From Klebsormidium nitens (Eukaryota > Plantae > Klebsormidiophyceae), in the NCBI GenBank assembly GCA_000708835.1, contig DF237017.1, positions 140,987-204,874 of the forward strand: DNA of 63,888 nt, read 5' to 3'. Positions 30,477 through 53,531 of this stretch are shown here, piece by piece (position 1 is the first letter of the stretch; every line of letters begins with the position of its first letter). Below the pieces are notes generated by a model, which saw nothing but the letters and a program-made list of their open reading frames with translations, made no database searches and had not been told where the DNA came from. Made by a program: the position numbers and the translations under genes.

Positions 30477-40683
<10,207 letters not shown>

Positions 40684-46619: not shown

Positions 46620-47030
46620 TGCCGCACTGGAGACAGCCCTCAGGTCGTGCAGAGTCGAAGAACAATGTTAAAAGTTTGGGCGAGTGCCAAGGAGCCTCTG
46701 TGAAGAGACCGGAGTCCACTGCCAGCAGAAGGTAAGGGTAAGTTAGTCGCAAAGAAAACAAAATTCGTGACAGCAAATGATCAAAGGGGATCAGAAGGCG
46801 CCTATAACTGGACATCAATGCCCGGCAGCGTTTTCCACCACTGATCAGAGCAGCTCAGCACTCCCTTACTTCTCCCACAAGCGAAAGCCTGGCACTGTTA
46901 CAATCAGAGTCTGGATTATTTTTCGACTGAACGCCCTGTATTTTACCAGGCGGAGCTGGTTGAGAGCTTGGTTAGACACCCCTGACCAGATCTTGAGGAG
47001 ATCTGGATTGCAGTGGAAGCTTTCTGTGGC

Positions 47031-50000
47031 ATGGCGCCTGCGGCATTGACGAACCGAGCTGCAGAACAGAGTGCGACAGGGCCCTTACCCCAGTGCTCCT
47101 CTTGGAGCTTACATCGAACCTCCTCCACGGGCCCCCAGCACCCAGCTGCCCCTCGCCGGTTGCTGCGAATTCGGACGCTTGCGGATCAGCCCGCACCTGC
47201 TGACTTGAGAGGGGAAGGGGAACAGATTTGGGAGGAGGCGCCCCCCGCCGTGTGGGAAGAGCAGCTACTGTACCCGGAGGCATGGTTTGACCTCTTTTTC
47301 AAGTACATCAAGCAGTCGCGCGAGGGAATGTGGGGCAGCGGGGCGGGACCGTTAAGCTGCATCCAGGTGGGAGGAGTGCAATAGCCCAACTCTACATCTC
47401 CATTGAACTTAATCAGCAAGTTGCTTAATCAGCTTACTTGCGGTATGACTAACAAATGTTAGCTGGTTATAGGCAATAAATGTATGTCTGGTCCGTGCTG
47501 GCCAGCAATCTTAGGGAACATCCTTTTTTAAAGACAAATCTTTGCAACACTTTCTGGTATAGACCAACCATTTATCGCTCGACTTTTACCTCTACAATGA
47601 TGCCTGATCAGACAGGACGTGGTTTGCCCATCCGTGTATTTTCCACAGAGCTTGAGTGTTTTCATCACGTTTTCGTGGTAAGACTTCAACCCGCTTATGC
47701 AGAGACCCCGTTCACCCACCAGCTCACCGCTGACCTTAGTGAAGGTTGTGAACAGTGACACGAGTACTATCCCGCAGCTTTTCTGCAGAGCGAACATTTC
47801 GTGGGTCAACTTTTACCTCGGCAAGACATCGTCAAAGTACAGTGATTCATCAGTGCGCCAATCGATCCTATTGCATGCAGAGCCTCGGATCTTTCCGCCA
47901 CCATTTATGGGAGGCCCCAGAGTACGGGCCCGAGCAGGAAAAGTGACACGACTCCTGCATTTGTTTCTTTGCGCAGGGTGAACTCGGGTGGCTGAACTTC
48001 GACTTGGGCGCAGGCGCCCAGAAGGAGGCTGCTAAAGACCATGGCTGCAGCTCTTGGGTCGGGTTCATGATTTGCTTTCCGGAGACCATGGCGTCCTACA
48101 AGACGATGGGCGAGCTCTGGAAGCCATTTGCCGCCATAGACGACTGGATGGAGCACCAGAGTCCGCGGACCTGGTCCCGGTGGTCGAGTGGTTCAAGGAG
48201 CTTTGGCGCATGAGGTGCGTCCTGAGGGGGTTTGAGCGGGAAAACAAGGTCCGGTCAGCAGGCGGTCAGGCAGGCGGGTTTCGCAGGTTTCCTTTCAGTC
48301 GGGGTCATGTAAAGAGAACCCACGCACTCAAGATGGTTCAAGGTCGAGCTGCAACGCCTGAGGTGCGCCCGGTATTTGACCAACTCAATTAGCAGCCGTT
48401 TTCAAGTAGGCGGGCTTGGTGGAAGGCATCGAACTTAGTGGACTTGGTCCAAAGTGCGCTCACGTAAAAGGTGACACAGCAGACATTTGAGAGCTGATTT
48501 CGAGAGCGAATCTGATAATTTTTTCGATGTCGAAGCTGACCCCCGACTTTCTTTCGAGTGCCACGACGCTCTTTACTTCACTGACACGCTCGGGACGCTG
48601 TGGGTGGCCTTCACGCGGTTCAACGACTCGCAGTCTGCTGGCCCACAAGTGGCTCATGCACACGTTCGGTAGAAGCAACAGCACGTCTCAGCTACGCGCT
48701 GCTGGATCCTCAGAGTAATGCATATCCATGGTGGTCATTACTTCGCAGCTAAGAGGCAGTCAACCGAACAAGGTCGACGAAAGGCGTGTAACCTCCGATT
48801 AACCATGCACACCTTGCAGATCGGGAAACTTCAACTGGTGGTAAAAGAGATTCCGAGCGGTGCAACGAGCCGTGGTTTGAACAGCGACTGCTGACTGCCA
48901 TTGTCTCCCAACGTCTCTGCAGTGCATCAAGCGACGGACTCGACTACGACCGGGCTATCGGTGCGGTGCCCACGTGCTTTGCCACGCGGCCGGAGCTTGC
49001 CAGCGCAGCCTCGGACTACCTGCTCGCCCTAGACAAGTACAATGCGCGTGCTACGCAGGTAGACCCTGCCTGGGTTCGTCGCATCTCGTGGGGCTCCTAC
49101 CTTTTTTACAGGGTGAGTTTCATCTAACCTGCCGCTAACACAGGGCTTTTTGGCGGTTAACCAGAGTCGGTTACGGGCTGGTTCGAAGCTGGTTAACTGA
49201 CCATAGACCAGACTCGAGCAATGACCAGGCTTTTAACATGGCTTTACTGCGGTTCTTGGTCAAAGAACCAGGCTGATTTTTGCTTATCGAACCTGGTTAG
49301 CAGCCAGACTTTCGTGTGTATAAGTCTGCCTGATTGGAGGACTTTGTTATCCAGCCGAGGCTGGTTAGTACTTGACTGGTTAGTCTTACCGTCTGCTGGT
49401 GACCTAAGCTAGTACTGCTGAGAATGGCTGTTGACGACGAAACGATTTGGGGTAGTAATGATGGGTCGGTACGGCTACTGACAGCAGCTTCACCTGTGCG
49501 AGTAGGGTGTGGTACAGCTGCTGACGACATGTCCGGAAATCCTAGTGTGGCCTCTTTTCGGGGCACCGTTGGATTTGTCCGTTTTCCAGCACCGGGACCT
49601 CCCGGCGGCAGTTTATCCGATGCCCGTCAATCTGCTCAGAACAAGCTAGAGTCGGGTTTGCAGACTTCGTCCTGGCACGTGAGCCACGTCTGCTATTGTG
49701 GTCCAAAACTTTGTGCCAAAAGCGATTCACTATAAATCAAAACCCGAACTAAGAGCGGACTTTAAAATATTCTTAGATCAAGTTTGGCTAAATAGTCCGG
49801 TTTCTCAGATCATAGCGCTCTTGATTCTGCCCTCGGATCTCAAACCAAACCGTACTGAAAACCGGACTCTTGATTCTGCCCTCAGATCTTAGACCAAATC
49901 GTACTCAAAATCAAAGTCCAGTTTTTAAGATCAACCCGTGTCTGAAAGTACCTGTGGCGCTCTTGGAAGTGCTCTTAAAACGAACTTACGATTTACAGCA

Positions 50001-52384
50001 AATCCAGCCTTTTCAGCGTGCCGACGAAGGCTCTCTTTGCACGCCGTTTCAACCGAACTCTTCACTTTGCTCGTGAGCGGTGTCAAAAGCGGCTCCGCTT
50101 CCGGCCTCCACAGGGCGTCATGCGCGAGGCCAACAGTCTAAGCGCGTACCAGACGCGGGGAACCCTGCCGACGCTGGAAGAGTACCTGCAGACCCGACTC
50201 TTCTCCTTCGGCGGGATCGGCATGAGAATGCTGACAATGGTGGAGCGCAGCGTCCGGTAAGCTAGCGGCTCCGGTAGGCCCGGGTAAACGAACTCTCGAT
50301 GCTACGTTAGGAACAGCCGCACTCACAAGGATTTTTGGCGGTTAAACATAGTCGGTTTACGTGCTGGTTCAAAGCTGGTTGAATGTCCAATAACCGGACT
50401 CGAGCGGTAACCACGTTTTTAGCATGGCTATGACGCACTTATTGGTCGAAGAACAACACTAAAGTCTGCTTATCAAACCTGGTTAGCAGCCAAACCTTCC
50501 TGTGACTGTCGGGAGACGCTGGTGGGGCTAGTCTATGGTTAGGGGGACACGGGCTCTCTTGCAAGATCCTTTCCATAAGCACGTTGGATCAAGGATTTGA
50601 ACGAGTGAGACATCTCCTCGGTGAGCAATTCCATTCTACTCTTCTTGCGCTCACTCTCCATAGAGTCAGGAACGTCCGTGCATCTGTTAGCCCTGTCTGC
50701 ATCTTGGCCTAAGCGGAATGAACAGAACCGCTTGCGTCACGGCCGTCCGAGCTTGGCATCGAAACTCAGGACAATTCCATCCGTCCTTCATTGTCCCGAC
50801 TCAGTAGCTACGCTTGCAAGCTGGCGTGGGAACAAGCGGGCCTCCGACGTTGATTAACTACAAGGGTCGCCACGTGGAATCTGTATAATCGTCGATCGGA
50901 TCCGGCGCGCTCTGACCAGCTGTCGCACCCGCGGCACGCTACATTCATGGCCACGCCCCCTGAGCCCCAAGTCTTTAATCCTTCGGAAATATCCCGCTCC
51001 ACGTGGCAGGCTGAACAGTGCCAGCTTTGCCCGCGCGCGCCTGCTGCTGGTGTATGCGGGCGCGGCCACCGCGCTCTTCAACGACTGCCTGGTCGCCGCC
51101 AAGGAGCCGGCCGAGGGCCTCTTCAACGCGGTCACTATCGCGGGGAAGAGCCACGTGGTGCGGCTGCATAACGTGATCCTCGACCTCTTTGCGGACGAGG
51201 CGGCCCGCTTCTGCGCGAGCGCGGCCCCGGTGAGCGCGTGTGCTAAACCAAACCCCTAAACCCCTAAACCCCTAAACCCCTAACCCCTAAACCCCTAAAC
51301 CCCTAACCCCTAAACCCCTAAACCCCCTAAAGTACAGTTTGGAAGAAAGCGGGGTCACCGATGGGCCCATCTCCTACAAACTGAAACTTAATCTCCGCAG
51401 TGCAACAGCGGCCAATTCCTTCCTCTTCAAAGTCGCGCCGGCTTTGAACCGGAGGCCGTGCTACGGTTCCGCACATCAACGAAGCGAGGTGCTCCGTTTC
51501 GGCTCCGGTTCGAGAAGCACGGATTGGAACTTAGGTCAAGCCTTGTGGCCTTCATTCAGAGACACCAACGATACGTGATTTTCCAAAAAGAATGGAATCG
51601 TGTTCTAATTTTTGTAAGGACATCCGGAGGCGCCACAGAAACATGTCCCTCACGGATCGGAAAATGTGATCGAATCTGCCTTATACAACGAAGAGTACTT
51701 TGTGAACAGAAACTTCTTGCGTCTGGATTTGATGTGACGTGGTTTTGCAACGCACTGACGACGCTCTTGCCGGACAATGGTGAATAACGGCCCGCACGTT
51801 GGTCGAATATAACAAGGCTGATTAATTAACGTGGCAAATGCTCACTGAACAAGCCCCTAGCAAATTCGACCCGCGAGGGGTCATCACGTGTTTTGAGTCC
51901 GGTACTCTTGTGTGCCCTAACCGCTGCTTGCGATAAGATAGGCGCCCGGTGGACGGGTGGGGTTACTTGGTGGTTAGGGTGGGTTCGGGTGCGGAGCGCG
52001 AGTTTTCCTGGTTAGTTCCATGGTGTGATTCAGTCGGGGATTGCGGATCTTCGGGCACACACCAGTTAGGCCACACAAGACTTACCAGTATCATGTCTTG
52101 CGTTGTCGCAGAAGGACGAAGCTGAGGAGTTCGTCAACGTGCTGAAGGCGAGCGTCACTGGTGGCGCCGTGTGGCACAACACCACTGGCCGCTACCGCAA
52201 GTATGTGGAGATGACGCGGCAGCCGTTTGCGATTGCGGGCTGGCCGGAGGGGCAGCTGACGGACGCCCACAGCCGGTTGCGCGGGGAGGTGCGCGCGATG
52301 TTGCAAAGGATTGCGCGTGAGGATCTGCCAGGGGAGTTCCCGCAATCGGATGAAGCGGACCGGCGGAGGGCGGCTGGTGCATGA
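47031..52384 (+). CDS. MTPSL: Microbial-type class I terpene synthase-like protein (MTPSL), possibly frameshifted; exons ~47031-47366, 47977-48214, 48483-48669, 48923-49112, 50114-50256, 51019-51229, 52112-52384
   Basis: DDWME (DDxxE, 48139-48153), PTLEEYLQTRLFSFGG, NDCLVAAKE (NSE/DTE-like, 51080-51106) and WHNTTGRY (WxxxxxRY, 52172-52195) occur in the correct order. A frame change is apparent at ~48163. Confidence 0.8.
49131..49318. repeat. Dispersed ~190-bp intronic repeat, copy 1 (MTPSL intron 4), probable non-autonomous transposon fragment
   Basis: Homologous to 50316-50504 (ttttggcggttaa...gctggttc(g/a)aagctggtt...gactcgagc...tgcttatc(g/a)aacctggttagcagcca). Rich in (C/G)TGGTT motifs. 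Confidence 0.8.
49818..49911. repeat. 2 x 49-bp intronic tandem repeat
   Basis: ctcttgattctgccctc(g/a)gatct...ccaaa(c/t)cgtact at 49818 and 49867. Confidence 0.85.
50316..50504. repeat. Dispersed ~190-bp intronic repeat, copy 2 (MTPSL intron 5)
   Basis: Homologous to 49131-49318. Confidence 0.8.
51253..51331 (+). repeat. Interstitial telomere-like array (CCCCTAAA)n, i.e. TTTAGGGG on the minus strand, 10 units
   Basis: 7 x CCCCTAAA, 2 x CCCCTAA and 1 x CCCCCTAAA, starting 23 bp after the exon-6 donor. Confidence 0.95.
51901..52086. mobile_element. MITE-like element (186 bp) in the last MTPSL intron
   Basis: Imperfect TIR ggtactcttgtgtgccctaac vs reverse complement ggtaagtcttgtgtggcctaac. 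Contains the shared core in reverse orientation (51951-51997). Confidence 0.65.
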
Positions 52385-52550
52385 CCTAAGCCTGCGCAGC
52401 TAACTAAGTAACAATGAAGATGTTTGAATGTACAGGGGGCCGTTTAAGTGATTATTCTGATCTGCGTATAAAGATATAGCGGACGGTGCATGACCTAAGC
52501 GCAGTTAACGGTGACATTTGAGTCCTTCCAAATGATGTACAGAGGGCCGT
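52376..52550 (+). repeat. Tandem duplication spanning the MTPSL stop codon (period ~109 bp)
   Basis: ggtgcatgacctaagc at 52376 and 52485; atgtacag(g/a)gggccgt also repeated. Confidence 0.8.
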
Positions 52551-53531
52551 CGTGCACAATTTTGGTTTGTGTAGGAAAGGTATATATGTAGCCTCAGCCT
52601 CGCTCAACGTGTTTTGTACATTCAAAAGCATAGGCACTTGCTGGTGCAATTATGATTTCCGGGCCATCCTCCCGAATTGCATCGTAGTAAGGGAAGGCCG
52701 GCCGGCCGGCAATCATGTAGGCCTTAGGGGGGCCAGTCACGGCCTCAGATTGTACATAGTTGTACATGTGACTTCGCGCACATCATGATGATGCATAGGA
52801 TCGGAATATCATGCACATAATGTTAGCGAAAGTTATATATAGGCATGATGTAACATGTGCATGTACATCTGGTGATGATTAATGGATGGCAGCTAGCAAG
52901 TGAGGAACATATGTTCGCTCATGAGACTGATTGATCCTGAGCTGCACGTGTTTATATGAGCCTATGCATCTGGCAGATCCTAAGTCGAGGCGCCCCGGCC
53001 TGGCATCAGTGTCTGGGTCAGATCATAGGATGGCGGGCCTCGCACCAGGTAGTATGGTAGTGTTGCCAAGGGGGCCGGGGTGACATGGCCGGGCGCCCTT
53101 CCAGTCACTGGCCAGAACTCTACGTGTCGAACGCCATTTGCTTTGCTGGCTCACGCGCGCAGCCTTTGCAGAGGCATGGAAAACTTGACGCATACAGGTG
53201 TAGCAGTGGCGACGCACAAAATGTAAAATCGATGGACTATTTTGTCGCCGCAATCTCTCCCCATGTTATGGTCGTGCGGGGGACCGTTAAAGCATGCATT
53301 GGCGAATGTCAGATCGTAGTGACCAATCAAGCGCAGACGTATGAAGACTGATCCAGACCAGCATGATTAGCTGATGATTTGCAACGAAATCGAAGTAGCA
53401 CGCGTTTCTGGGGTGCAAAGCGGATGCACTAAGACAAAGGACCGAGTCCGACTCGACCATTCCGCATTTCCAAACTCAAGGACGTCGGGTCAGCCAGAGT
53501 CAGTAACGGCAGCTGCACAGTCGCGCCGGCT

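Follow-up and report, generated by a model that had tools for sequence, protein, structure and literature searches.

A divergent microbial-type terpene synthase gene in Klebsormidium nitens, a streptophyte alga: transcription and a break in the reading frame

Microbial-type terpene synthase-like (MTPSL) genes have been described from Selaginella, Marchantia, hornworts and ferns (Jia et al. 2016, as cited in PMC9169658, PMC12448838 and PMC12890914), and reviews treat them as typical of non-seed land plants (PMC9169658, PMC12448838, PMC12890914). A survey of 158 algal transcriptomes, as cited in PMC6681836, found an MTPSL gene in just one charophyte. For Klebsormidium, a 2023 survey (PMC10600500) lists five genes carrying PF03936 only in K. 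nitens; Chara, Mesotaenium, Spirogloea and Chlamydomonas have none in its list. A 2022 paper reported matches in K. flaccidum that did not show typical terpene synthase (TPS) features (PMC9169658). TPS-like sequences in K. nitens have already been counted without being described. Here we analyse a microbial-type TPS locus of K. nitens that lies at positions 47031-52384 of a 63,888-nucleotide (nt) stretch of contig DF237017.1 (assembly GCA_000708835.1), referred to in its entirety as the window. The locus belongs to the same genome and the same superfamily as the sequences of those two papers, neither of which describes its splicing, its motifs or its frameshift. The K. nitens gene identifiers do not appear in the main text of PMC10600500 or in the examined part of its supplement, and the locus may be among the five.

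We conclude that the locus is probably a six-exon, five-intron nuclear gene from a small and very divergent algal branch of the microbial-type terpene synthases, and that the copy studied here was probably inactivated not long ago, leaving a pseudogene that is still transcribed or, in the sequenced strain, a null allele. The algal family resembles the bacterial synthases of PF19086 (Terpene_syn_C_2) in having a single alpha-domain and in the way its motifs follow one another and are spaced, with the Asp-rich motif first, then the RG.P.L.EYL..R..S.G region, then the NSE motif and last the W....RY pattern. It differs from them in sharing only about 20% identity, in being extended at the N-terminus by about 85 residues, in having about 20 more residues separating the two metal motifs, in the replacement of the middle Ser, Thr or Gly of the NSE motif by Val or Ala, and in carrying five spliceosomal introns; the window copy is, in addition, frameshifted. 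Compared by gene features, the family shares with the land-plant MTPSL genes a microbial-type single-domain protein, a place in a streptophyte nuclear genome, introns, and a multigene organisation with birth and death, and it differs in that the host is an alga.

Transcript structure and the frame break in exon 2

Contigs of one DNA run and of three probable RNA runs (X5, X9 and X10, from three studies of 2015, 2018 and 2024) were aligned to positions 46900-52600. All read evidence at the locus consists of assembled contigs, in which rare variants are dropped. The X5, X9 and X10 contigs are spliced and are therefore taken as RNA. The gene lies on the + strand and runs from an ATG at 47031 to a stop codon at 52382-52384, the span proposed in the initial annotation of this DNA. 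RNA contigs of X5, X9 and X10 define exactly five GT-AG joints, at 47366|47977, 48214|48923, 49112|50114, 50256|51010 and 51229|52112, with the first present in X5, X9 and X10 and the second in all three studies; the six spliceosomal introns previously proposed are thus reduced to five. Intron 4 is retained in RNA contigs of all three studies, and its spliced joint is found only in X9 and X10, with none seen in X5. The 3' untranslated region (UTR) extends to about 52581-52595 in the RNA contigs. Given that the introns are spliced in RNA and carry host-type repeats, and that their positions are common to the homologous genes described below, contamination is excluded, and the locus is a nuclear gene that has introns and is expressed.

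The reading frame of this gene is broken by a 1-nt deletion at 48163/48164 (CAG AGT CC|GCG GAC, + strand), four codons past the Asp-rich motif DDWME. When exon 2 is aligned as DNA with its closest homologue, L001, a single 1-nt gap is required, and it falls in the window sequence. Codons upstream of the break are in the frame of the ATG, and the conserved codons downstream (ADLVPVVEWFKELWRM), together with all later exons, are in the -1 frame. Each of five homologues (L001, L003, L006, L007 and L009) reads exon 2 in one frame as DDWLE...WF/W..LWR, for example DDWLEQQGPEELGVVVAWFRELWRM. In the window copy the ATG frame passes through DDWMEHQS and reaches a TGA at 48211-48213, giving an open reading frame (ORF) of 190 amino acids (aa) whose last 16 residues are out of frame. 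No ORF of the RNA-supported mRNA spans both metal-binding motifs. The gene had been put forward as a 'domesticated' terpene synthase; an intact enzyme gene cannot be maintained for an mRNA that encodes only 190 aa.

Over exon 2 there are no mismatches and no gaps between the window and the DNA contig, or between the window and the RNA contigs of 2015, 2018 and 2024. Because these contigs agree, the deletion is real in the organism and in its mRNA and does not stem from assembly. Beyond the break, the frame used by the homologues contains no stop in 291 codons, compared with 11 and 4 stops in the other two frames of the same mRNA segment. As this downstream frame is still open, the lesion is expected to be recent or strain-specific or, less likely, to be bypassed. 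Loss of one base in exon 2 leaves the spliced mRNA, which is made, encoding only a 190-residue N-terminal fragment, and a protein that holds both metal-binding motifs could presumably not be made from this copy.

An uninterrupted ORF of 502 aa can be obtained if the gene is given seven exons and six introns, through a splice donor at 48190|48191 together with an additional exon, 48536-48668, and it is this ORF that commends the model. The joints it needs, 48190|48536 and 48668|48923, are however present in no RNA contig of the three studies, all of which show 48214|48923, and within intron 2 the RNA contigs give only low-depth unspliced fragments and no exon at 48536-48668. The proposed donor, GTTCAA at 48191, is a poor one, the conserved peptide DLVPVVEWFKELWRM is placed out of frame, and the extra exon has no counterpart in the five homologues. 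We consider the probability of this arrangement practically negligible and rejected the six-intron model, since its extra exon serves only to bridge the frameshift and is contradicted by both the RNA joints and the homologues. A sequencing or assembly error in a gene that is really intact would account for a lesion that is single and followed by a perfectly open frame, but is extremely unlikely when independently assembled RNA contigs from 2015, 2018 and 2024 and the DNA run share the same gap-free sequence.

It is also very unlikely, in our judgement, that the gene functions despite the break, whether by frameshifting on the ribosome, by a corrected transcript that is rare, by a new translation start at Met191 or by two fragments that assemble. 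The stop-free run of 291 downstream codons would fit such a bypass, as would the finding of the mRNA in several studies when a premature stop should trigger nonsense-mediated decay. Against it, exon 2 was searched for a slippery heptamer of the form X XXY YYZ and contains none, the RNA contigs show no alternative joint and no indel, a product begun at Met191 would be devoid of the Asp-rich motif, and we know of no split class I terpene synthase that might serve as a precedent. We therefore favour a transcribed pseudogene or a null allele in the strain sequenced. Some considerations weigh against this reading: a minor corrected or alternatively spliced mRNA may exist, since assembled contigs drop rare variants; all runs may derive from one cultured strain, in which case the deletion could be specific to that strain and not species-wide; and, with the downstream frame open, some translation of the C-terminal part may persist.

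The features of the locus are collected in Table 1. A further 90-codon ORF at 46777-47049, in another frame, begins 5' of the main ATG and overlaps the start of the main ORF. Provided that genome and 5' UTR are colinear, this would make it an upstream ORF; RNA contigs reach at least 214 nt upstream of 46900.

Table 1. Exons, introns and motifs of the terpene synthase locus (window coordinates)
Feature	Position	Strand	Description	Evidence
Exon 1	47031-47366	+	112 codons from the ATG; Ser/Thr/Ala/Pro/Arg-rich N-terminus, then conserved block RRLLRIRTLADQPAPA...LLYPEAWFDLF	RNA joint, homology
Intron 1	47367-47976	+	610 nt, GT-AG, phase 0	RNA joint
Exon 2	47977-48214	+	DDWME, frame break, premature stop	RNA joints on both sides, alignments to L001, L003, L006, L007 and L009
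DDWME	48139-48153	+	Asp-rich motif, DDxx(D/E)	
Premature TGA	48211-48213	+	One base before the exon-2 donor; four exon junctions downstream	
Intron 2	48215-48922	+	708 nt, GT-AG, phase 2; encloses the supposed extra exon 48536-48668	RNA joint
Exon 3	48923-49112	+		RNA joints, homologues
Intron 3	49113-50113	+	1001 nt; carries a multi-copy repeat of about 190 nt at 49131-49318	
Exon 4	50114-50256	+	Carries the sensor-region motif, read as diphosphate-sensor Arg plus R-x-x-S-x-G triad	
RGTLPTLEEYLQTRLFSFGG	50156-50215	+	Sensor region	
Intron 4	50257-51009	+	753 nt; unspliced contigs in all three studies	
Exon 5	51010-51229	+	Carries the NSE-type motif	
NDCLVAAKE	51080-51106	+	NSE-type motif	
Intron 5	51230-52111	+	882 nt; (AAACCCCT)x10 at 51250-51331; very high-copy repeat core at 51966-51998	
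Exon 6	52112-52384	+	Carries WHNTTGRY; stop codon at 52382-52384	
WHNTTGRY	52172-52195	+	RY pair	

Homology to class I synthases and the metal-binding motifs

Membership of the microbial-type class I synthase superfamily, as put forward in the initial annotation, is borne out by comparisons of whole proteins and of single exons. A scan of bacterial genomes with the exon-4 profile led to a Chitinophaga pinensis gene (L005:1461-2474) that is a canonical PF19086 synthase (1.5e-44), and 63 Chitinophaga-type PF19086 synthases, relatives of this gene, were used as the comparison set. The window protein entered the whole-protein tests as a read-through with X at the break, together with the spliced proteins of L001 and L003. 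In hhalign the family aligned with the 63 synthases over 266 columns with a probability of 97%, E=1.1e-10 and a score of 83.3, and the four motifs fell into register (DDWME with DDQFD, RG.LPTLEEY..R with its bacterial counterpart, NDCLVAAKE with NDLFSFNKE, and W..GRY with W..ARY). Sixty column shuffles scored at most 23.8 and the reversed alignment 16.5, with probabilities of at most 1.5% in these controls, and the outcome was the same when L006 and L009 were added (96.5%). A hidden Markov model (HMM) of the 63 synthases gave 26.1 bits for L003, 13.7 for the window and 9.6 for L001, all three above 900 shuffled controls.

At the level of single exons, 29 of the 30 matches of an exon-4 profile (three sequences) in the PDB were chains of bacterial class I terpene synthases. 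Their alignments fall at the diphosphate-sensor region, with a best E of 1.4e-3, and they include spiroviolene synthase variants (6tjz) and epi-isozizaene synthase (3kb9). The best PDB match of the exon-2 profile was likewise a terpene synthase, with DDW in register (E=0.087). Exon 4 of five homologues matches PF19086, reaching 24.0 bits for exon 4 of L009 alone, just over the gathering score. Other searches speak against the assignment: exon 4 of the window alone stays below the gathering score (E=0.013, 15.7 bits against a Pfam cut-off of 23.7), and neither the exon-5 and exon-6 profiles nor exon 5 alone found a terpene synthase in the PDB. When the window's exons were searched one by one in Pfam, exon 4 with its weak PF19086 match was the only one to give a result; exon 1 had no match. 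As single exons are too short for a strong match and several lines agree, homology to the microbial-type class I terpene synthases is taken as established at the level of sequence comparison. Only about 85 residues precede the aligned alpha-domain, and the plant-type beta/gamma domain (PF01397) is absent from the N-terminus.

All four class I motifs listed in the initial annotation were located on the + strand in the order given there. DDWME aligns with the bacterial DDQFD, and its DDW is invariant in six family sequences. The sensor Arg (R283-L-F-S-F-G) and the G-R-Y at 402-404 (read-through numbering) also align with the bacterial motifs. The NSE-type motif departs from the (N/D)Dxx(S/T/G)xxxE triad: NDCLVAAKE keeps the N and the E, and its middle ligand is Val. 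This middle ligand is usually Ser, Thr or Gly. Val or Ala occupies the position in all seven exon-5 sequences read, which follow the pattern NDxx[V/A]xxK[E/D].

By analogy with characterised class I synthases, intact members of the family should bind a prenyl diphosphate through a Mg2+ cluster held by DDxxE and by the N and E of the NSE motif, would sense the diphosphate through the Arg of R-x-x-S-x-G and the C-terminal RY pair, and would ionise the substrate and then cyclise the resulting carbocation. It may be asked whether the family retains a terpene synthase fold without being a canonical cyclase, having some other activity or a non-catalytic role. The uniform replacement of the middle NSE ligand by Val or Ala would agree with this, as would L003, which deviates from R-x-x-S-x-G as well. 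We nonetheless think it unlikely. The Asp-rich motif is retained under purifying selection, as are the N and the E/D of the NSE triad, the sensor Arg and the RY pair, and this pattern would fit a metal-dependent, diphosphate-ionising enzyme.

The first 45 residues of the window protein comprise 10 Ser/Thr, 8 Ala, 6 Pro, 4 Arg/Lys and 1 Asp/Glu. The N-terminus is thus rich in Ser, Arg and Ala as previously noted, and its composition, like that of a transit peptide, is the ground for the possible plastid targeting proposed earlier.

Homologous genes and evolution of the family

Homologous genes were found in JGI samples 3300060284 and 3300060285, namely L001, L003 (= L002), L006, L007 (= L008) and L009, and fragments (L004, L010 and L011) came from three Logan runs (ERR10900196, ERR11523665 and ERR11523670). 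L010 and L011 were considered as spliced mRNA and rejected, being short genomic fragments. The homologues have the same intron positions and phases as the window gene. Three of them, L003 (416 aa), L006 (487 aa) and L009 (486 aa), have intact ORFs; L007 yielded no exon 6. Protein identity with the window copy is 51-53% for L001, L006 and L009 and 29% for L003, and exon 1 of the window shares 59-66% identity with exon 1 of L001, L006 and L009 over the conserved block. Among these last three genes the ratio of non-synonymous to synonymous substitution (dN/dS) is 0.23-0.36. At least five paralogues occur in the same sample, each on a large contig of its own, the JGI samples being taken as one alga, and they split into two subfamilies, L001/L006/L009 and L003/L007. 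These sequences make up a genuine protein family, which is subject to purifying selection and in which genes arise and are lost.

Relatives outside this material were few. When 1.84 billion representative proteins were scanned in full by HMMER, with exon 5 (73 aa) as the query, only three true relatives came back, which are exon-sized ORFs called on eukaryotic DNA contigs, and a profile word search gave four more. The same scan of 1.84 billion representatives with exon 5 yielded no land-plant MTPSL at E<=0.001, and no close relative beyond a few algal exon fragments. An exon-1 word search of the protein collection gave no match; the 190-aa product and the alga's own proteins are therefore not in the collection searched. 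Two metagenome scans with exon-5 and exon-6 alignments found nothing.

More interesting is the result for the family, a small and divergent group whose genes bear introns, whose NSE motif is changed and which has intact members in a related alga. We suggest, as a possibility that falls somewhat short of probable, that Klebsormidium-like streptophyte algae hold their own old, intron-bearing microbial-type TPS family with the NDxx[V/A]xxK[E/D] motif, distinct from the land-plant MTPSL groups and from the sampled bacterial and fungal clades, of which the window copy would be a just-inactivated member. If this is true, microbial-type TPS genes were present in the streptophyte lineage before land plants, or independently of them. 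A bona fide nuclear, spliced and expressed microbial-type TPS gene is in any case present in a streptophyte alga, where surveys gave essentially none, and genes of the L006, L009 and L003 types offer concrete material for asking whether streptophyte algae make cyclic terpenes and when the genes were acquired. Caution is needed with the reference genome, whose copy carries the frameshift; a gene model, automatic or drawn by eye, in which an invented intron 'repairs' the frame would list it wrongly as a functional enzyme.

The homologous loci show some rearrangement. In L001 (7396-9462; JGI 3300060284, contig Ga0590114_0001188) a 2-kb segment is inverted when compared with L006; it takes in exons 5-6, the 3' end and a portion of intron 4. 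All six exons of L001 are open despite the inversion, and its protein is 90% identical to that of L006; no inverted repeat was found flanking the inverted segment. The exon-5 ORF of L001 was seen on two of the contigs read, with neighbouring genes mostly alike. A tblastx comparison of the window with the L001 locus, covering about 8 kb on each side of the L001 gene, gave matches confined to the gene's own exons. Decayed copies of exon edges occur in adjoining introns, with the 3' end of exon 5 recurring in intron 5 of L007 (9373-9453 and 9532-9606) and of L009 (9269-9346). In the window, a weak copy of the start of exon 2 (E about 0.8) lies in intron 1 at 47790-47846.

Repeats and other features of the window

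Introns 3, 4 and 5 of the window gene carry repeated sequence. Close to their starts, introns 3 and 4 each contain a repeat of about 190 nt (49131-49318 and 50316-50504); its copies are 77-83% alike, and the DNA contig depth there is 150-400, compared with 19 elsewhere. A very high-copy repeat core in intron 5, at 51966-51998, has a depth of about 2350 and many loose ends in both DNA and RNA contigs. Intron 5 also holds an interstitial telomere-like array at 51250-51331, made up of 10.4 copies of AAACCCCT (TTTAGGGG on the opposite strand) with 93% matches.

Elsewhere in the window, the part with the highest GC content (55-62% GC) holds four long ORFs of 275-575 aa on the minus strand at 31993-40683, none of which had a Pfam match.

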